From Adineta vaga (lineage: Eukaryota > Animalia > Rotifera): 64,000 bases of DNA. Both the position numbers and the translations under genes were made by a program. Under the pieces are notes generated by a model. It saw only the letters and a list, made by a program, of their open reading frames with translations, was not told the DNA's origin and did no database searches. Location: NCBI GenBank assembly GCA_021613535.1, contig CP075494.1:62001-126000 (forward strand), given 5' to 3'. The first letter of the stretch is position 1, and each line of letters starts with the position of its first letter. Positions 9,040-54,094 of this stretch are shown piece by piece.

Positions 9040-11296
9040 TTATAAATATAATGGAGAAAATAATTCGATGATGCACATTTTTGGACACTGTTTATGACGC
9101 AATGGAACGATGTCTTGGCATACAATAACAAAAATTCGTCCTTCAATAACAAAAGCACTACGAGTCATGCTGAAACACAAGCATTATCTTCAAAATCGTT
9201 ATAGGCATACCAGATCAGAGGAAGATAGACAAAGTCTCCGTTCATGGCACAAATTAGTACAACATGAATTCAACCAACACAAAGTAAACAGGTGGAACAA
9301 TTTTATTGACAATGTGGCTTCTCCACAGCTAACAACGTTTTGGAAAACAATTAGAATTCTTAATAAAAAACGATCTGTAGAATTTTCTGCAATAACAGAA
9401 AATAATCAAATACACAGAACACCTGTTCAAATATTATCATGCTTAACACAGCATTTCAAAGTCAGATTTCAAGCACCCTCAATAGATTTAACAGTAAAAA
9501 CTGATAAAGAAGCACATGATCTATGGGAATTACTAGATCAAGCACTACCTGAAGACATTCAACTAATTAGTCAACAATCGGATCTTATATTTACAACAAG
9601 GAAAGTATGGGAAGTATTGAAATCACTTAAAGCAAAGAACTCATCTAGTTTCGACAATATTTCTAATAAAATGATTAAAAATATACCTGAAGTATATGCC
9701 CAAATCCTTACAGAACATTATAATGCTTTATTTGCTGACTTATTCTGGCATAAACAGTGGAAGCAATCAAGAACAATCTGTTTCAATAAAGTAGAAAGTG
9801 CTGCACCAACAACACAACAACTTAGACCAATTTCTCTGTTACCAGTACTTGGAAAAGTATACGAACGACTTTTTCTTATACGCTTCAAAAAATGGCTATT
9901 TAAATATGGCATACTTCCTTGGCAACAATCTGGAGCTCAATCCAATCAATGTACTACTTCACGACTTAATCATATGCTTGAACAAGCATTCGCGTCACTA
10001 TTGAGTAACACTTTCACACCAATACTTTTTGTCGACTTCCTGCAAGCTTTTGATCTTTTGTGGCAAGAGGGACTACTCTTGAAACTAAAACGATTAAACT
10101 GTCCATTCTCCTATCTTATATGGATAAAAAATTATTTTACAGATCGATCAATGTTTATAGACTTAAATGGTCAAATATCAGAAGAAATTTCAGTAAAAAG
10201 AGGTGCACCACAAGGAAGTGTATTTGGTGCTATCGCATACATCGTTGCACATCATGATTTGCAGCAAGTGTTTCGAAACCCCGAAAACAATCACCTTTAT
10301 GTTGATGATCTAGGGAGTGTTTATATACCTAGTTTATACGAAGAATACAAAGATCAATTAACCGATATTCAAATAAGGATCAACACAGATTTAATTAAAT
10401 TACACGATTATGCAATTGAATGGCATCAGCCTGTCAACAGTAAAAAGACTGAATACGTAGTGTTTGATCGTGTAATAAAATCTCCTAAATTTAAAATCTT
10501 TTACAATGGAAATCAATTAGAACAAAAGAAAAATTTTAAATACTTGGGATATAGATTAGATTCAAAGTTATCTTTTAACTGTGTAGTAGCTGATCATTTA
10601 CAAAAATGCCGGCAAACGTATACAATTTTAAAATATATACATAATCGATTTCCTGCCTTCTACAAACTTAAACTACGGTTTTTTAATACATATGTCTGGC
10701 CACATCTTCATGCAATGTCTTCAATTTATTGTCTTCTATCAAATACTCAAAGAAATAAAATCGATGGTTTTTATCGAAGATGTCTACGAATTATATATCA
10801 TCTATTTCAATGCTCAACAAACGATCTACACGAAGTCTTTCGACTGCCAACGTTAGAAGAAAAATATAGAAAAACCTTAACCAAACGACTAAGTAATATT
10901 GAACGATATGAACAAGAACTAATTCAATGTTATTTAATGCACAAAAACATAATAAATACAACACGTCATCACTATCGTGAAAAGGCAATTATACAAGCAA
11001 TGCCAAGAGGCCGACCTAGCACGCGCATGTTAAATTTCTACAACAGATCCACAACATACTTCGACAAACTCATCAATTTCTGTTACATACATCATATTAC
11101 AGAAGAACCGTAACAAGAGGAAAAATAAACAAAATTAATTAACAATCAAACCTTTTAAATTAATACTTAATCTATACTTTTCTTTATTGTAATTTTCGTG
11201 CATGTAACTGTTCAAAATAGTATTTAACGTTCTTTCATAGTGGTCAGGACCAATATGGTCAAACCACTCAAATAAAGCAATTTATATATATATATT
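9040..11296 (+). mobile_element. 5'-truncated non-LTR retrotransposon (APE-type LINE); 5' end approximate
   Basis: RT ORF, 3' UTR stem-loop 11240-11267, AATAAA, then (TA)n tail. Confidence 0.85.
9110..11113 (+). CDS. LINE ORF2 reverse transcriptase, endonuclease domain missing
   Basis: RPISLL, FVDFLQAFD, GAPQGS, YVDD and KYLG motifs. Confidence 0.9.
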   Translation: MSWHTITKIRPSITKALRVMLKHKHYLQNRYRHTRSEEDRQSLRSWHKLVQHEFNQHKVNRWNNFIDNVASPQLTTFWKTIRILNKKRSVEFSAITENNQIHRTPVQILSCLTQHFKVRFQAPSIDLTVKTDKEAHDLWELLDQALPEDIQLISQQSDLIFTTRKVWEVLKSLKAKNSSSFDNISNKMIKNIPEVYAQILTEHYNALFADLFWHKQWKQSRTICFNKVESAAPTTQQLRPISLLPVLGKVYERLFLIRFKKWLFKYGILPWQQSGAQSNQCTTSRLNHMLEQAFASLLSNTFTPILFVDFLQAFDLLWQEGLLLKLKRLNCPFSYLIWIKNYFTDRSMFIDLNGQISEEISVKRGAPQGSVFGAIAYIVAHHDLQQVFRNPENNHLYVDDLGSVYIPSLYEEYKDQLTDIQIRINTDLIKLHDYAIEWHQPVNSKKTEYVVFDRVIKSPKFKIFYNGNQLEQKKNFKYLGYRLDSKLSFNCVVADHLQKCRQTYTILKYIHNRFPAFYKLKLRFFNTYVWPHLHAMSSIYCLLSNTQRNKIDGFYRRCLRIIYHLFQCSTNDLHEVFRLPTLEEKYRKTLTKRLSNIERYEQELIQCYLMHKNIINTTRHHYREKAIIQAMPRGRPSTRMLNFYNRSTTYFDKLINFCYIHHITEEP

Positions 11297-11372
11297 ATCA
11301 AATGAAAAAGTATTAGTTACTGGTGGACAGAATAGTAGTAGTATTTCTCTCAATAGTGCTGAATTCTATTGA
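11297..11372 (+). pseudogene. Orphan last Kelch-repeat fragment
   Basis: SNEKVLVTGGQNSSSISLNSAEFY* directly after the LINE tail; no upstream repeats on the other side of the LINE. Confidence 0.6.
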
Positions 11373-11749
11373 TTAATAAAAATAAGAAAAAAAGCTCGAA
11401 TTTTTATTTCTTTCTTTTCAACTTAACTAAATTTTCTTAATAAAATAAAACCATTTTGAAATGAAATAAGATATTTTAAAAAAAGAAAGAAACGAATGAA
11501 TATTGCTCTTGTAATTTATGAAAATCGAATAAAAATTTAAAAAAATTTCTCTATGAAAAAAGAATTGATTATTTAATTAGAAAATTGAAATATGAAGTTT
11601 TTTTTTAATCAAAATTCTTTGAAAAAAAAGGTAAAATTTTGTTAAATTGATTTTCATCTAAAATAAATTTGGTTATTATGACAGAAAAATGTGATTGTAT
11701 TAATGATATTTAGTTATATTTACATTGATAAAAGGATTTAGATTTTGTC

Positions 11750-11936
11750 TGATAGCGTTTGTGTAAATCACACAACGCTAAACTAGAGACAAAGATGGTC
11801 CTTCTAGTCTAATTGGCTTAGGACATATGTGTGGATAGTAGAAGATGTGGGTTCGGATCCCACGAAGGTCATTTTTTCTCCTTCTTTCATTCTCTTTCGC
11901 TGATGTCCCTCTCGTTGCTCTAATGTGAAGCTAACA
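11750..11936 (+). mobile_element. tRNA-carrying TG...CA element, copy 1 (solo-LTR/TRIM-like or Ginger-like MITE)
   Basis: Ends TGATAGC...GCTAACA; 5-bp TSD TTGTC; homologous to 45341-45534. Confidence 0.8.
11798..11871 (+). ncRNA. tRNA-like Pol III unit with degenerate anticodon arm
   Basis: Acceptor stem gtccttc/gaaggtc, A box tagtctaattgg, T arm gtggg-ttcggat-cccac, followed by TTTTTT. Confidence 0.65.
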
Positions 11937-12447
11937 TTGTCTTATGCACCTCCACACAATGGCCTGTATGTAAGGAAAACTCAAAAAATTGCAAAAAAAA
12001 TCAACAATTGCGATATAAATGGGTTCACATCGCCAAAACAGTAAGGACAATTGAACTGGAGTTTTCTGCAGATATGCAATTTAGTAAGTTATAATTATGG
12101 CAAAAATTTCGTGCGTAAATCTTAGGCCGTTCGCGGGACCTGGTTTTGACAGTTCGACAGCTCCAGGCCTAGGCTATGAATACAATGAAAATTCATTATA
12201 AGTTCTAAAGGTACTATATACTGGCTCACACTATTCTCACTTTATTAACGTATGTTTAATCAAATCTCTGTGATTCATTTTCCATTCCTTATCTGCCTCT
12301 CATCTTTTAATTGAGAAAAAAAACGCGTTTTTTTTTCTTTCCTCTTTATAACTATACTGTGTATACTAGACAAAACTATTGAAATATACACGACATAAAT
12401 CACATTTATTTACCTACACGAAACTTACCTAAATCGACACGTAACTT

Positions 12448-38791: not shown

Positions 38792-41791
38792 TTAGCAGAA
38801 AGAATCAGGAAATGATTGTAGAAGTCCAATTTCTTGTAAATCATAATGATAAACTGAAGAGTTTTGAGGAACAGAAGAGAGCCAAGAAACTACTTTTTCA
38901 AGAATTGATAGTTGAGGAACAAATCTTTTAGATCTTCTTAAGCAACTAATTGGAAATTCTTTATCTAACCAGCTTTTTCTGAACTCACATAAGTTTGCTT
39001 TTTCGAAAATGAGATAACCATCAATTGAATTAGATAACGCAAACAAATAACGATTCCAATAGGCCGAGCATCGATCTTCAAGAGATAATTCATCAAGTAT
39101 GTGTGCAAAAAACAATTCATTCCAACAAAGACAATTAAGGGTGCGACGCAGAGAAGTATAGTAAAATTTAGACATATTTTCTTGTTGTTTACGAGTAAGT
39201 AACGGAAAAATAGGATAAATCCAAGTGAAAATAGGAAGAACATGAGAGTAAAATAAAACTTTACGAAGACGAGGAGAAGAACAACCGAAAAGTTTAAAAG
39301 AGCGAATAAGAGCTATTCTTTTTCGCACTTTACATTCAGTAAATTTAATTAATTTAGTCCAACCAAGTTTAGATGAAATAATATAACCAAGATATTTATA
39401 TTCTTTTACCCATTTAACTTGATCATTTCCATCATTATCAAATGAAATAGTAAACTTTGGGTTTCCAACCGCTCTAGCACTAAATAAAGCTTCAGTTTTA
39501 TTTCTATTTAATGATTGATCAGTTAATAAAGTATAAAATTCTAAACAATCAAGAAAAGATTTAACCCGTTTCTCAAGATCTAAACATTGATCTGTAAAAC
39601 GAATTCCTAGTTGACCAGCAAGAACTGCGGCAACATCATCAGCAAAGAAATGACTAGTACAACCAGAAAGAAACTGACTCATATCACAATGATAAGTAAT
39701 AAACAAAGTAGGAGTTAATACACTTCCTTGAGGTCCACCTTTACCAATCGAAAACAAACGAGAATGACACCCATTAAAATCAATAAAACGTTTCCTATTA
39801 CGAAGCCAAACATCAATCCAATTTAAATATGAAGAAGGAATACCAAGTTGTTTAAGTTTACCTATACATCCACTGTGCCAAATTTGATCAAAGGCTGACT
39901 TTAGATCAATAAATATAGTACAAATCGGTTCACTATTTGAGAAAATACTATAGATATCTTCTAAAAACAACAACAACCGTGTTTGTAATCGAAAATTTTC
40001 ACGGAATCCAGACTGATTGTCAGGTAGTAAACCCCTTCGAATCAGAACATCACGAAATCTATTGAGAAATAATCTTTCACCAACCTTAAGAAAAGAATCA
40101 ATAAGCGAAATAGGTCTAGTAAGTGAAGGAGAACAAATCGAATCCTTTTTAGCAAGTAAAATCATACGAGTATTTTTCCAACCAACAGGAAGAACAGCCT
40201 TTTGAAAAGAGTGGTTAAACAATTTAAGAAATAACGACCAATAATTAACATCAACAAAATCAAACATATAATTACTAAGACCATTTGCATCAATAGACTT
40301 CTTTTTACGTTTATTTTTAATAATAAGAAGCAATTCATCAAGAGTTACTTCAGGAATCTGTTCATCGGTATTATCAAAATTAATAGGTGGAGAATCTGTA
40401 TAAGGATGAGGTCTACAAATATCGGAAGTACTAAAAAAAGATTCAAAATAATCAGCTGCAATTTCACACATGGTTTTAGTATCATTAGAAACACTTCCTG
40501 AAGAATCAATAAGTCCATGAATAGAAGAAGAGGAAGGTTTAAGATGCCTTTTAGTTCTACTCCAAAAAAAATTGGAAGCAGAAGTAGAGGAATTACGAAA
40601 GTGAAGAAGAGAAGAAAGATTAGAGGAAAAAAAATTTCTCAGTTCATTTTTAGCAATTTTTCGAAGCGAATTAATCACACTTTTTAAATCAGAATTTTTT
40701 GTTCTCATCTGTTGAAAAAAAAGTGCTCGAATATATGACAGAAATGATCTGATTTCTATAGGAATAGAAGGACGATATTTATCACATGAAAAAACAATCG
40801 TGCAACGAGAAAAAAGAAGAAACAAAAACTTGCTATAATCATTATATAAAACATCAAGATTATCGACATTCCATAATTTCTCCCAAAAAGGATAAGTAAA
40901 TTCTGTAAACAGAGAAAATACCTTCCAACGAACATTTTTACCAACACGATGTTGATCCTTTTTAAAAGGAATAACAGAAAGGATCGGAACATGATCACTT
41001 GATGTCTTACGATATGTTTGAATTTTGACATTAGAACAATTAGTGAACACATAATCAATAACCCGATCCGACCTTGTAGAAGTGGGCTCATCAGTAAAAA
41101 TAGGAGAAAGAAAATTACTATCAGCCCAATCAAGAAGAACATCAGTTTTTTGTTTGTCCTGCAAAAGATCAACATTATAATCTCCGAATACAACACATTT
41201 TTTTGATAAATAGGAAGATAGATCATGCCAATTCCAAGTTTTACTATCAGGTGCATACACACCTAAAACACGTAATGTATCAATACCTTTAATATCAACG
41301 ATACAAACATTGGGAACGTTACAGATGACACGAACAACATGAATATCACTTTTAACTAAAATCAAAACACCACCATGACCGTTTTCTCCTTCCTGGAAAA
41401 ACATCTTAAAGTTATTGAAGATCTTTTCGTAAAAGGAAATTTCTAAGTTGCCAGTTTCAAGAAGAATTACTATATCAGGATTAGAAGAAGAAATTAAAAG
41501 AAGAACTTCATTCCATCTTAGACCAAGGCCTCTAACATTGAAAGATAATATAAGAAGAGAGGAAAAACTAGAAGAAGAAGAAAGCGAACTTTTTGGTACA
41601 AATAATTTCCATTTAGAAAAACAAGAAGCAAGAGTTAAACTTCCTTCCCATTCATTAAGAATAGAGGAAAAAAGATTGAAATCAAAACGCGACAAAGTAG
41701 CTTTCGCTTTAGATAACATATCATCACGTCTACAAAGATTGGAGGAAGAGATACAAGAGAAAAAAAGAGTAGAGTAAGGAGACAGAGACAT
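38792..41791 (-). CDS. LINE ORF2: APE endonuclease plus RT, intact 999 aa
   Basis: SFNVRGL, LLET, GDYN, IDY, SDH; RPISL, GGPQGS, FADD, YKYLG. Confidence 0.95.
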   Translation of the reverse strand: MSLSPYSTLFFSCISSSNLCRRDDMLSKAKATLSRFDFNLFSSILNEWEGSLTLASCFSKWKLFVPKSSLSSSSSFSSLLILSFNVRGLGLRWNEVLLLISSSNPDIVILLETGNLEISFYEKIFNNFKMFFQEGENGHGGVLILVKSDIHVVRVICNVPNVCIVDIKGIDTLRVLGVYAPDSKTWNWHDLSSYLSKKCVVFGDYNVDLLQDKQKTDVLLDWADSNFLSPIFTDEPTSTRSDRVIDYVFTNCSNVKIQTYRKTSSDHVPILSVIPFKKDQHRVGKNVRWKVFSLFTEFTYPFWEKLWNVDNLDVLYNDYSKFLFLLFSRCTIVFSCDKYRPSIPIEIRSFLSYIRALFFQQMRTKNSDLKSVINSLRKIAKNELRNFFSSNLSSLLHFRNSSTSASNFFWSRTKRHLKPSSSSIHGLIDSSGSVSNDTKTMCEIAADYFESFFSTSDICRPHPYTDSPPINFDNTDEQIPEVTLDELLLIIKNKRKKKSIDANGLSNYMFDFVDVNYWSLFLKLFNHSFQKAVLPVGWKNTRMILLAKKDSICSPSLTRPISLIDSFLKVGERLFLNRFRDVLIRRGLLPDNQSGFRENFRLQTRLLLFLEDIYSIFSNSEPICTIFIDLKSAFDQIWHSGCIGKLKQLGIPSSYLNWIDVWLRNRKRFIDFNGCHSRLFSIGKGGPQGSVLTPTLFITYHCDMSQFLSGCTSHFFADDVAAVLAGQLGIRFTDQCLDLEKRVKSFLDCLEFYTLLTDQSLNRNKTEALFSARAVGNPKFTISFDNDGNDQVKWVKEYKYLGYIISSKLGWTKLIKFTECKVRKRIALIRSFKLFGCSSPRLRKVLFYSHVLPIFTWIYPIFPLLTRKQQENMSKFYYTSLRRTLNCLCWNELFFAHILDELSLEDRCSAYWNRYLFALSNSIDGYLIFEKANLCEFRKSWLDKEFPISCLRRSKRFVPQLSILEKVVSWLSSVPQNSSVYHYDLQEIGLLQSFPDSFC

Positions 41792-43519: not shown

Positions 43520-45017
43520 AGGAATGGCTTTTAAATTCCAAAAATGAGCAATAATTAAAAAAAAAATTCCTCGAAATACTTTAACACGTGGTTAAAGTGG
43601 AGAAAGAAAGGAAAAAAAATGTAAACAATAGACGAGAACGACGAAAATGAGAAAGCGGATAATTGTTGTTTATGAAGAAGAGGAAAAGTATACAATCATA
43701 GATTGTCACAATGCCAGATACCTATAATTTGAAACTTAAATTCAACTGTCTAATTCTTCGTTCAATTATTCGAATATTCGTATAATTGAAAAACTGAACA
43801 AATAGTTAAATAGTTGAATTGAAATTTCGATTTGCGCATTACTAAAAGCTGCAAAGATCGTAGTAGCTATTCATAGCAGACTGCCAGTTCGTGTGAACAA
43901 TGATTATGAATAATCAACATTACATAAATAACAAGAACAATGACAGTTCTTTGTTCACTTTTGAAAAAGGGTGAAAATCATGAGGATCGTTGTCGAGATG
44001 TCATTTCTAAGGGCAAGTTCTATCTTAGGTGTTATCCATATAGTCGAGTGTAATGCAAGTCTCCTTCGACGAGCGTTATTTATTGTAATTAAATTAGACA
44101 AAAGTTTGAATTTTAGTTTGAGGAAAAAGTTTCTTTTGAGCTCATTAAGTCGACGAATTTTCCGAGTAACTAACCATCGGTGTGAAGACGTGGCAGCGCG
44201 TAATCATTAACCATTTTCGAAGCCGTTGTCATAAATTTTGTACGATCACATGAATATTCATAGCCAGCTTCACTAGAAATTGAAAAAATAGAGGAGTAGT
44301 CGTCAGCTTGCTGAATAACGTCATGATTTAAAAACATGACCCGTTCATGTGATCATTTACGTCAGCTGAAATCATCAAATTCTGTGATGGAATATACAAT
44401 GCCCGTTCTTAATAACGACACTAGATCGAAACTTTATTTTGTTCTTACCCGCGTTCATCTATTTTTCAACCAATTCCAAACAACCTTATAATTGGGGAAT
44501 CCTTGGATGACGACCTATCGATTAATGCATTTCCGATCCCTCTTCTCATATGTTTTCGTGGAGAAATCACCGGTCTACGATCGTGATGTCTTGCTGTCGT
44601 TATTACTTACTACTTCTGTAATATTGACACTCAAGTGAAATCTATGCAGAAAATGGAATTTTTTCAAAAAACAACATCTTTGACGAGTTTTATCAAGAAA
44701 TCGATGGCACGGTTTTAAGTCAATTTTGAAGATCGTCTCAAGTTCTACTTATATCTATCGATTCAGGTCGATTGAACCATGTCTTAAGAAATCCTAAAAT
44801 CAACAAAAAGCATTTCGGATCGATGGAAAAAATAGATGTCCCTAATGACGACGCCCAGCAATTTTTTTGCTCTAATAACTACAATGAGCTATTTGGAAGC
44901 GATTTCTGGGGCGAAGCTGATGGCGCAATCTTCAACATCGTAGAAGAGAAAGCATTCCCCAACGATCTTATCCAAACATTAATTATACGAGATCATTAAC
45001 AACAATATCAGCGGCTA

Positions 45018-45950
45018 TTATGTTGGCAACAGAGTTCTTGTGTTTCTTACAAGTTTTCTAAAACATTTGAGAAAGTTCCAAAATTATTCATATTAAGGGT
45101 AGATCAAGGAAGTATGAATATCTTTCGAATGATGATATAGTCATCGAATATGAATGGTGATCGTGAACTCAATAAATCTTTCGAGGAAAGAGATTGAAGT
45201 GGTTTTTTACTGGCTGCATTGCGTCTGAGTTACAAAGCAATGGAAGCAGCCAACAAAATATGTTGCATAATGATCGATGATGTACTCTCTATCTGTCTGA
45301 CATAACATTGATTTGATCGTCTTAAGAATAGCTGCTAAGATGTTAGCTTCCTATCTGAGCAAGGGATAGAACATCGGCAAAAGAGAACAAAAGAAAAAGA
45401 AAATGAAGCAAAGGTAATGTACGTAGGGCTCGAACTCACACCTTCTGCTATCCACAGATGTCTTAGATCGGTTAGACTAAAAGGACCATTTTAATTTCAA
45501 GTTTAGCGTTGTATGATTCACACAAAAGCTAACATAAGAACTCGACGATTTACCTAGCTCTAGACGATCGCTAGAAGTTGCTGTGGAAAAGCATCCAAGC
45601 AGAATAGATTATACATGAAAGTATAGAGCCTAGATACCCCACAAGTTAGTACTATATATCCTTCAACAAAAGGTTGCTGCTTGTATAGATTTAATCCTAT
45701 CTCACCGCAACTAGCAGTCGTCTCATGATTTTATCACGGGCAATAAGGAGTGAACAATGTATCTAAACTACACTAACAGACACCAACAGCTGAATGCTGA
45801 TCAAAGAAGCGAATCTACGCCGAAGACTGATTCATATCCCATGAAACTAATTTTCAGTGTTTGGTGGGAAACCAGTCGAACTATTCAACGGCTATTTCTT
45901 CTAAATGGCTGTACCTTCCCTGTCGATCTCTACTTTCAGCAATTGGACCG
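45018..45950 (+). mobile_element. Decayed, 3'-truncated mariner related to 25732-26975
   Basis: TIR ttatgttggcaacagagtt; relics caaagcaatggaagcagccaac, ctcgacgatttacct, SVWW, QQLDR. Confidence 0.8.
45341..45534 (-). mobile_element. tRNA-carrying TG...CA element, copy 2, nested in the decayed mariner
   Basis: TGTTAGCTT...AAGCTAACA ends; 5-bp TSD TAAGA; A box and GTTCGA box on the minus strand. Confidence 0.85.
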
Positions 45951-46131
45951 ATATGATTGGATACGAGTGAGAGACTGAGTGAGGGTGTGGATAAAGAATA
46001 AATACTCCCATTCATCCTACAACAACATCTGGTAGGGTCCCATACATGACTTCTAAAAGCAAAGTTTTAGATGATTGAGATGAAATCATCAAATTAAGAG
46101 CGTTCATAGTGTAGTGGTTAATGGTCAAGTT

Positions 46132-51583: not shown

Positions 51584-54094
51584 CAATGGAGGTGTGTGTA
51601 TTGTTGAGCGAAAACACTAGATATTTTTACATCAAAAGAAAGCTCTCATCGCCAATATAACAAGGTTAAAATATTAGCTGCCCTTGGCGACTCTAGAGGG
51701 AGATATTCAATTTTTACCATATTCACGATTCATGTATATATGAACATTAGGATCATTTATATCAATTTTCTATGCAATCAATTAAGTATTTCACCATTAG
51801 AATTTTTAGATCTCATTGAATTTCATTACTATAACAGTGAGATCATATTAGTTTTGATGTCTTTTCGAGCTTAAGTGATAGTCAATACCTTCAAATGGCC
51901 AATAGTCTCCATTTTATTTAAGTTGAAAATAATAGATTATATAATAGACAGTTTTTAGAAATTAACTAGAAGTGTAGATGTAAATCTTCAACCAGATTGT
52001 AGTAACAAAGGGATTTTTTACACCAAACGCACATTAATAATGTTCGCTCATTGCAGTTGTTAACTGAACAGAATAGATCATAAAATCTGAAGCAAACATC
52101 TTTTGGTTTTTCAATCTGTCCAATTGTTTCATTTGTTATTCCAGCTTGTACGAATCCATTTTTAATAAGATTTGTAAATGCTGGAGCTGATAATTGATTA
52201 TGAATAATAGAATGAACGTTGATGAAATATTGCCGATCGCTTATAGTCATTTCTGTTCGATTGATATGAGTATAATGCTCGATTTTTTTATGAATAAATC
52301 GCCATGAACGAAATAAAGAAAGATCTTGTGGTTGAATATAGCCTGTTGATCCTTCGGGAAAAATTAATAACTGACTGTTTTGATTAGGAAACACTGCTCT
52401 AAATTTAGTTAGATCAGCTTGCGTTTTCCAACAATCAAGGAAAAGAAGAAATTTTTTACCTACCAAAGGACGTAAAACTTCAGTTAGAAAAGCGTGATGT
52501 TGTTCACCACCGCTTTTTCCAGATTTAGAAGCTTTTACTACAACATTTGGTGGTATAATTAATTTTTTTTCTACTCTTTGACCAAACTGATTTTCTTTTT
52601 CTTGAAGGATAAGTAAGAATTTTTCCAATAAATGCCCATTAGCTGATGTAACTGGTTGAACTGTGTAAGAATGAGTTGTATTATATTTCTTTTTAACGGC
52701 TACTTCTGTTGTTCTTTCACCAGTAAAAGATAGGGTTCTTGGAGATACATATTCTTGTTGAAACGAACAATGATCGCTGTTTAAGATTTCGTTCGTAGAA
52801 TACTTTGATATTAAAGATCTTTGACTTCCGATCCAATTATGAGCATCTGAAATGTATATTACATTTAAACACACGTACTTAAAGATGTAATAGATGTTCA
52901 TATACCGTCTAAACTGCACGTTTTTTTGTTTGGTTTAGTTCGAGTAATTATTTTGTTATACCGTCTTGATGATATTCTGTTTTCTGTTTTAAAATCATTT
53001 ATAAATGATTTACTTGCCTTGAACGTACTCCAATCTAATTCTCTTGCTATTTGAACTGCAAAAAGTTCCAGATCAGTATTATGAACGGCTTCTTTTTCAA
53101 TTGTTCTTTTCACATAAAATTCATTAAACATAAATTCTTTAATTTGCTTTAATTTTTCTAATCTCGTGCCGTTGTTTTTGATGTATTGTCTGAACCTTGG
53201 AATATAATGCATGTATTTGACTTTTCTAAATCGATGGGAAATAGTTGCGAATCCAGCATTCGGATGTTGGTCAACCCATTCGACTATCTTTTCCATTTCT
53301 TCTAACGTAAAACAACTTTTTAAGTCAGAATGTTCATTCTCATTGTAATCATCACTTCCATCGCCGTCTTCTTCTTCATCAGTCATTCCGTCAAATTCAT
53401 CTTCAAATTCGAGAGTCTCGTAAGAATACAACTCATTGAAGTAGCTGTCTTGGAACGACTTCAGAATTTCGAACAGTCGTTCGGCAGCAAAGATTTCATC
53501 GGCAGTTGCTGCAGATTTTTCAGATGTGTATTCAGTTTCAGCCAAATGAAGAAGTTGTTTAGCGATGTTTAATAAATTCATTTTTTAATCTGAAGAAATA
53601 AACTATTCAATTCAATAGATCCAACAGAAAACAAAATAGAATAACTTTTCAATATTACATTTCTTGGTGATTTCTTGACACCAATTGTAAATAAATGGTC
53701 AATAGATCACCAAGTGATGCATCAATGTACTTCAAGTTCGCATATTATACGCATAAGTCACTTTTCACAGAATCAGATGTCTTTCTCTTCATTTCAGTAC
53801 TACTTAAGCTCGAAAAGACATCAAAACTAATATGATCTCACTGTTATAGTAATGAAATTCAATGAGATCTAAAAATTCTAATGGTGAAATACTTAATTGA
53901 TTGCATAGAAAATTGATATAAATGATCCTAATGTTCATATATACATGAATCGTGAATATGGTAAAAATTGAATATCTCCCTCTAGAGTCGCCAAGGGCAG
54001 CTAATATTTTAACCTTGTTATATTGGCGATGAGAGCTTTCTTTTGATGTAAAAATATCTAGTGTTTTCGCTCAACAATACACACACCTCCATTG
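51584..54094 (-). mobile_element. Tc4/Tc5-like (pogo-related) DNA transposon, apparently intact
   Basis: 293-bp TIRs (51584-51876, 53802-54094) starting CAATGGAGG; TAA TSD in a CTAAG target. Confidence 0.9.
51966..53581 (-). CDS. Tc5-like DDE transposase, ~518 aa, intron 52847-52905
   Basis: CENP-B-like HTH (FKASKSFINDFK); NSDH, FLDCW and IQPQD catalytic regions; C-terminal Cys cluster; splice is in frame. Confidence 0.85.

Follow-up and report, generated by a model that had tools for sequence, protein, structure and literature searches.

The two elements described here are very probably solo LTRs of a non-coding TRIM of the Helenus type, belonging to the group named TRIMp3, with a tRNA-derived module in each LTR. 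Both lie in a 64,000-nucleotide stretch of the Adineta vaga assembly (100.8 Mb, 6 contigs), C5:62001-126000, which is called the window below. The assignment draws on the fixed termini and 5-bp TSDs of the family in the A. vaga genome, on a complete element and a solo LTR at one and the same site in metagenome contigs, and on signals held in common with autonomous Ty3/gypsy elements of A. vaga. The predicted order LTR–PBS–PPT–LTR is seen solely in a related metagenome organism, with 63% protein identity to A. vaga. The class itself has already been published (PMC10886601), and the A. vaga family adds a further member to it without constituting a novel type of transposon.

Two copies in the window and their family in the A. 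vaga genome

Table 1. Positions of the two window copies and their parts (window coordinates) and of the intact autonomous element (contig coordinates).
Feature	Position	Strand	Description
Left TSD, copy 1	11745-11749		TTGTC, read directly, same as 11937-11941
Copy 1	11750-11936	+	187-bp solo LTR, TGATAGC...GCTAACA; 150.8 bits against family profile R1
5' hairpin, copy 1	11752-11781	+	tagcgtttgtg / cacacaacgcta; just inside the LTR start; fold -12.0 kcal/mol
tRNA-like module, copy 1	11798-11871	+	74-nt cloverleaf (ARAGORN); Rfam RF00005 34.5 bits, gathering score 29
A box, copy 1	about 11805-11816	+	within the tRNA-like module
B box, copy 1	11850-11860	+	GGTTCGGATCC; within the tRNA-like module
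T6 run, copy 1	11872-11877	+	directly 3' of the tRNA-like module; Pol III terminator-like, read directly
Pyrimidine-rich 3' LTR part, copy 1	11878-11929	+	poorly conserved; identity 0.46-0.51 between genome and metagenome copies
Right TSD, copy 1	11937-11941		TTGTC, read directly
TSD, copy 2, 3'-end side of the element	45336-45340		TAAGA on the + strand
Copy 2	45341-45534	-	194-bp solo LTR, TGTTAGC...GCTAACA; 147.3 bits against R1
TSD, copy 2, 5'-end side of the element	45535-45539		TAAGA on the + strand
Intact Ty3/gypsy element	C1:634376-641306 (L101:377-7307)		6.9 kb, TSD ATAAT

Direct reading confirmed the ends and the 5-bp TSDs (TTGTC and TAAGA) that the initial annotation had described for both copies; on the strand of copy 2 itself, its TSD reads TCTTA. 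The alignment of the two copies runs from one terminus to the other, with a BLAST identity of 72%, and their similarity ceases exactly at these ends. The hairpin, the tRNA-like cloverleaf and the T6 run ascribed to copy 1 were likewise recovered, by folding, by ARAGORN and the Rfam tRNA model, and by direct reading, respectively (Table 1). Over the whole 64-kb window, ARAGORN finds a single tRNA-shaped sequence, the module of copy 1. The tRNA-like part of copy 2 is degraded, and no tRNA is called there by ARAGORN. In flank searches for empty sites, the gaps between flank matches differed from the length of the element for both window copies, and the flanks of copy 2 are repetitive.

Several other repeats occur in the window. 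A segment of ~80 bp a little upstream of copy 1 (11292-11369) belongs to a dispersed satellite-like repeat with dozens of matches, present at many loci as tandem arrays with a period of ~141-144 bp (for example C1:1018883-1019861, C1:721497-722453, C2:552389-553299 and C3:2983502-2984416). Copy 2 is nested in a diverged repeat (45016-45328 and 45579-45951), which on both sides has 66-75% identity to at least 20 other loci and is probably an older transposon. The window further contains a LINE-like ORF with reverse-transcriptase and AP-endonuclease domains (38792-41791, minus strand), a long ORF with a reverse-transcriptase domain (9110-11113, plus strand) and a Tc5/DDE_1 transposase remnant (51966-52919, minus strand).

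BLAST-type genome searches, for which two family copies and the sequence-only profile R1 served as queries, located about 30 family loci at a cut-off of E = 1e-8, two pairs of which are segmental duplicates. The distribution is mostly subtelomeric, with about 22 of the 30 loci within 1.1 Mb of a contig end. As copies are only 72-93% identical to one another, the family is old in A. vaga. An alignment of about 14 full-length copies with their flanks has fixed termini, TGTTAGC...GCTAACA. Perfect 5-bp TSDs are found at 10 independent copies, of which the tenth comes from the metagenome set described below and nine are genomic: TTGTC (L001, window copy 1), AAGAC (L002, of which L003 is a segmental duplicate), TTACC (L004), ATCTA (L007), TTTAG (L010), ATTTC (L011), AGAAT (L012), TCTTA (L015, window copy 2) and AATAA (L019). 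Two more genomic copies have TSDs matching at four of five bases, and two further ones have none; a 5-bp flank match is expected by chance in about 1 of 1000 cases. Collecting the genomic copies, a check proposed in the initial annotation, thus confirmed fixed ends and 5-bp TSDs in most full-length copies.

All of these copies are solo LTRs, and no full-length TRIM was found in the A. vaga genome. Apart from segmental duplicates ~40 kb apart, the genome contains no pair of same-strand copies within 20 kb, and no further PBS or PPT junctions were found in it beyond those of autonomous elements. Searches with the terminal 22-mers returned family members only and no longer element with the same ends, and none of the 49 integrase matches in the genome adjoins a family copy.

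Two candidates from the genome search were rejected. An apparent second LTR 3.6 kb downstream, near C4:14749971, is a tandem repeat of ~33 bp with the core GTCGGTNACGTCTGTG (C4:14753410-14753780; L040:4440-4810), whose likeness to the first 20 bases at the 5' end of the LTR is due to chance. Three weak profile matches on L067, close to the C3 contig end, were assigned to another repeat related to tRNA, since the tRNA part alone matches. Near this contig end lies (C3:20296980-20298240; L067:1483-2736) a palindrome of two 328-nt arms that are 98% complementary, each arm carrying a different tRNA-related sequence that has the T-arm region in common with the TRIM module.

One family copy (C1:16468143-16468303; L008/L026) is truncated at both ends and runs into telomere-like repeats of the TGTGGG type, which is the bdelloid telomere unit. 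The junction is internal, 1.7 Mb from the contig end. Repeats beside this copy are also matched by the left flank of the metagenome contig L078.

A complete relative and a candidate helper clade

A 24-base pattern lying within the tRNA-like part served as the query in a scan of metagenome contigs, and related copies were found on 24 of them. Given a protein identity of 63% and an identity of 73-86% over conserved DNA to the A. vaga genome, these contigs derive from related organisms, which are presumably other bdelloids. Perfect 5-bp TSDs flank six of the metagenome copies (AAGCT, GTTTT, ACGAT, AACAG, GCTGG and ACAGC). For the flanks of three metagenome copies, no orthologous empty site was found in the A. 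vaga genome.

The contig L075 (Ga0209930_1000792) contains a complete element of about 500 bp, not counting a nested element of 445 bp. After removal of the latter, the two LTRs of 227 bp are 100% identical, and the whole element is flanked by the TSD ACAGC. Its interior measures 46 bp and consists of a 3-nt spacer, an 18-nt PBS and the purine tract GGAAGGGGGAGG, which abuts the 3' LTR. The PBS is the complement of the tRNA-Phe(GAA) 3' terminus, and corresponds in all 18 bases to that end of a tRNA-Phe(GAA) gene of A. vaga. A contig from another sample, L082, carries a solo 227-bp LTR at the same site. This LTR is 100% identical to those of L075, and both flanks and the ACAGC TSD are identical as well. 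The L082 copy is the expected product of LTR–LTR recombination and directly shows how solo copies originate.

The presence or absence of paired copies with PBS and PPT had been named in the initial annotation as a way to recognise such an element; there are none in the A. vaga genome, and L075 provides one in a relative. Together, L075 and L082 favour the first of the two readings offered there, that of a solo LTR from a TRIM that is a tRNA-based analogue of Cassandra. The autonomous A. vaga elements described below, with the same LTR ends, PBS, PPT and TSD length, lend it further support.

On another metagenome contig, L087, two copies 1.2 kb apart were considered as the LTRs of one element; they have no PBS, PPT or common TSD, and are therefore independent solo LTRs. 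In each of the contig pairs L076/L089 and L095/L079, the left flank and LTR are the same and the right flanks differ, and a TSD is present in only one contig of the pair. These differences could be due to recombination between copies, to haplotype differences or to chimeric assembly at the repeat. The nested 445-bp element of L075 (L075:4618-5062), which is unrelated to the TRIM, has terminal inverted repeats (TAGAGTCCGGCGGGA...) and interrupts the 5' LTR within the T arm of its tRNA-like module. Its 8-bp TSD, CCCACGAA, suggests a hAT-type MITE; a second, internal copy of the terminal repeat is present, and the insertion may consist of two units.

The PBS of L075 occurs twice in the A. vaga genome, at the 3' end of the tRNA-Phe(GAA) gene and in the intact Ty3/gypsy element of contig C1 (Table 1). 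This element encodes a gag protein of 559 aa with matches to Retrotrans_gag and the Ty3 capsid, a pol protein of 1277 aa with protease, RT, RNase H and integrase in this order, and a third protein of 237 aa (ORF3) with no Pfam match. Its LTRs are 229 bp long, differ by at most one base, start with TGTTAGCG and end with AGCTCACA, the same end as in the L075 element. The 5' LTR is followed by a 3-nt spacer and by the same PBS as in L075, in agreement with a tRNA-Phe primer, and its purine tract, AAGGGGGGAGG, resembles the PPT of L075 in type. Being single-copy and young, this particular element cannot itself have moved the old copies.

A search for a purine tract followed by TGTTAGCG revealed five more junctions, each 1.4-3.4 kb from an integrase match. 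The LTRs of these five further gypsy elements all start with TGTTAGCG, and two of the families end in ...GCTAACA, exactly as the window copies do. Between the LTRs of the TRIM and those of the autonomous elements, similarity is confined to the opening 8-12 bases, the hairpin and the closing 6-8 bases; otherwise they are unrelated, and the tRNA-like module is absent from the LTRs of the six autonomous elements examined. The initial annotation had also proposed a search for autonomous elements with the same termini. Its outcome is twofold, with the LTR tips found in gypsy elements and the full 22-nt ends in no other element.

The bdelloid Ty3/gypsy clade and the small element have in common the features on which recognition by integrase and RT depends, namely their LTR tips, PBS, PPT and a predicted 5-bp staggered cut, and these common signals indicate that the small element most likely depends on that clade. 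In the mechanism that we propose, the TRIM would encode nothing, and RT and integrase would be supplied by members of this clade, whose LTR termini may be summarised as TGTTAGCG...GCTNACA and which would use the same PBS and PPT and produce 5-bp target duplications. Recombination of the 5' LTR with the 3' LTR would then remove the interior and leave a solo LTR with its 5-bp TSD. In A. vaga, this solo state would be the only one left, represented by old copies in mainly subtelomeric locations.

The tRNA-like module and the 5' hairpin

For the tRNA-like module of 13 further copies, the Rfam tRNA model gives 38.7-53.5 bits, so that 14 copies in all score above the threshold. ARAGORN calls a tRNA in eight A. 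vaga copies and, at the five metagenome loci scanned, in all six copies present. The anticodon assigned by ARAGORN is GGA or AGA ('Ser') among the copies, and GGA in copy 1. A long variable arm is absent from the module, and the anticodon loop has a non-canonical C at position 33 and a T at position 37; on these grounds it is a pseudo-tRNA, predicted not to make a working tRNA. A group of predicted 'tRNA-Ser(GGA/AGA)' genes of a bdelloid genome is hereby explained as retrotransposon LTRs, which is of consequence for tRNA annotation. The 3' end of the module is not complementary to the PBS, and reverse transcription is therefore not self-primed. In most copies the module is followed by a run of at least four T, and in most of those by T5.

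Comparison of the A. vaga copies with the metagenome copies gives an identity of 0.84 for the tRNA-like part, 0.62 for the hairpin, 0.64 for the linker and 0.46-0.51 for the 3' half. The 24-base bait lies inside the tRNA-like part and inflates the conservation observed there, but the identity is still 0.82 when the bait positions are left out. The A and B boxes and the terminator-like T-run are far better preserved than the remainder of the LTR, which suggests that they are required by the element, in the simplest case for transcription by Pol III. The module most likely acts as an internal Pol III promoter and terminator, or as a repeated 'R' segment. Retrotransposition driven by Pol III is doubtful, however, because the T5-T6 run after the module and the T4 runs downstream would tend to stop Pol III before a complete template is produced. 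Under this model, most transcripts would end at the T5-T6 run, at about 80 nt, and a full-length template would need read-through.

The 5' hairpin occupies bases 3-33 of the LTR. Since subfamilies differ in register by a bulge, it was assessed by folding each copy and comparing the result with shuffled sequences, which gave z-scores of -3.6 to -5.4 in copies other than copy 1. The outer stem TTAGCG/CGCTAA is kept, while four or more different self-complementary versions of the inner stem occur, a case of covariation. The same hairpin is predicted in the LTR of one autonomous gypsy element (TGTTAGCGTCA...TGACGCTA, z = -4.95).

A more speculative model, which we consider rather unlikely as a whole, assigns a role to both of these parts. 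The module, from the Pol III start to the T-run, would constitute the 'R' of the element, and the hairpin would be a recognition signal for the helper. Occasional read-through of the terminator would yield a Pol III transcript extending from the R of the 5' LTR to the R of the 3' LTR, which the gypsy machinery would reverse-transcribe. The covarying hairpin, within the first 35 bases of the LTR and next to the PPT, would mark the parasite for its helper. If this model were true, helper and parasite would form a pair recognisable by its cis signals in an animal of ancient asexuality, and the pair would remain active in one bdelloid lineage or more, as judged from the identical LTRs and from the full-length and solo forms at one site.

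Alternative origins and comparison with known elements

Single copies, TG...CA ends and a short fixed TSD by themselves fit Ginger-type elements. The Ginger2/TDD elements have TGT...ACA-type ends, a short fixed TSD and an integrase related to those of LTR elements. The family could accordingly consist of MITEs, that is, of non-autonomous Ginger2/TDD or Transib-type DNA transposons with a single unit of 195 bp moved by a DDE transposase, and in A. vaga every copy indeed stands alone, bounded by TG...CA, with inverted termini of 7 bp and a TSD fixed at 5 bp. Such an inverted repeat is only 7 bp long, however, and no longer element with the same 22-nt ends was found in the genome. Moreover, one copy is known that has two LTRs, a PBS and a PPT, a solo copy occupies the same site, and the termini, PBS and PPT match those of RT-encoding gypsy elements of the A. 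vaga genome. The family is thus not described by a single TIR-bounded unit with an RT-less transposase partner, and the Ginger-type MITE that the initial annotation had offered as its second reading is rejected as highly improbable. The two-LTR form also argues against a SINE of the conventional, tRNA-derived kind, mobilised by the reverse transcriptase of a LINE or of a Penelope-like element. With its A and B boxes and its T-run, the tRNA-like head would suit a SINE, and the window does contain ORFs with LINE reverse transcriptase. Yet the element begins with a fixed TG 47 bp upstream of the tRNA-like part, and terminates at an invariant CA, lacking any tail that is A-rich or made of simple repeats. 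Its TSDs are always 5 bp, and no series of 5' truncations is seen. With this leader, fixed end and invariant TSD it falls outside SINE2, and we assign a SINE origin a negligible probability.

The third alternative accepts that the copies are solo LTRs and derives them from a larger element, an autonomous gypsy element or a LARD, whose LTR gained a tRNA-like insert in Adineta, and not from a TRIM. No interior is kept in A. vaga, and the A. vaga copies therefore do not fix the original size; in addition, bdelloid LTR elements commonly persist as solo LTRs (PMC5408684). Against this origin, the sole complete relative has an interior of 46 bp, none of the six autonomous elements examined has the tRNA-like module in its LTR, and none of the 49 integrase matches lies beside a family copy. 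We regard a larger element as improbable, though less remote than the two preceding alternatives.

The preferred reading, a Helenus-type TRIM, can be compared with the published class. Helenus comprises TRIMs with tRNA-like LTRs, as defined by Kojima (2024, Biology (Basel) 13:119; PMC10886601), who united it under the name 'TRIMp3' with Ajax and with the 5S rRNA-bearing Cassandra of plants. Its reported hosts are fungi, one plant and six animal phyla, with neither rotifers nor Adineta mentioned, and its TSDs are of 4 bp in animals and 5 bp in fungi and plants (PMC10886601). According to the same source, most Helenus LTRs carry a pseudo-tRNA, the PBSs of animal Helenus are Gypsy-like and point to Gypsy helpers, some families are known as solo LTRs only, including ones with 5-bp TSDs, and Pol III transcription from the internal promoter is unproven for Helenus too.

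The family agrees with this description in being a non-coding TRIM with a fixed TSD, whose tRNA-derived LTR sequence has conserved A and B boxes and whose predicted tRNA is non-functional, with a mismatch of isotype and anticodon. Two LTRs with a short non-coding interior containing PBS and PPT are present in the relative L075, and solo-only families with TSDs are known on both sides. It differs in its rotifer host, outside the six animal phyla reported, and in its TSD of 5 bp, as in the local gypsy clade, against 4 bp in animal Helenus. The interior is only 46 bp here, although the total of about 500 bp is within the reported range of 311-1263 bp, and a T5-T6 run follows the tRNA-like part. 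LTR termini and 5' hairpin are common with autonomous elements here, whereas PMC10886601 reports no LTR similarity to helpers. The possibility raised in the initial annotation that the element had already been catalogued therefore holds for the class and not for the A. vaga family. A survey of bdelloid transposable elements (PMC7943196) makes no mention of TRIM, SINE or tRNA-like repeats.

Cassandra, in the parts of PMC10886601 that treat it, is likewise a TRIM, has 5-bp TSDs and carries in each LTR a small-RNA gene of the Pol III type, including promoter and terminator; it differs in carrying 5S rRNA instead of a tRNA, in its plant hosts and in its independent origin.

The present family extends the range of Helenus/TRIMp3 to Rotifera and provides an animal case with 5-bp TSDs. 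Unlike in the published cases, the putative parasite is tied to a concrete helper clade by LTR termini, hairpin, PBS and PPT. The candidate helper resembles the bdelloid elements Vesta, Juno and TelKA (Rodriguez et al. 2017, PMC5408684) in its gag, its pol with the order PR-RT-RH-IN and its short ORF3, and also in its near-identical pair of TG...CA LTRs, whose length is within the reported 159-551 bp. The sole link to any named family is its ORF3 of 237 aa, which is similar to the 210-230 aa of Vesta4 and Vesta6c (PMC5408684). Autonomous elements of this type differ from the TRIM in having no tRNA-like module in the LTRs examined. Solo LTRs are frequent among Vesta, Juno and TelKA, and bdelloid LTR elements often decay to this state (PMC5408684). 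The full-length and solo forms at one site in L075 and L082 illustrate the kind of recombination thought to limit the transposon load in asexual bdelloids.
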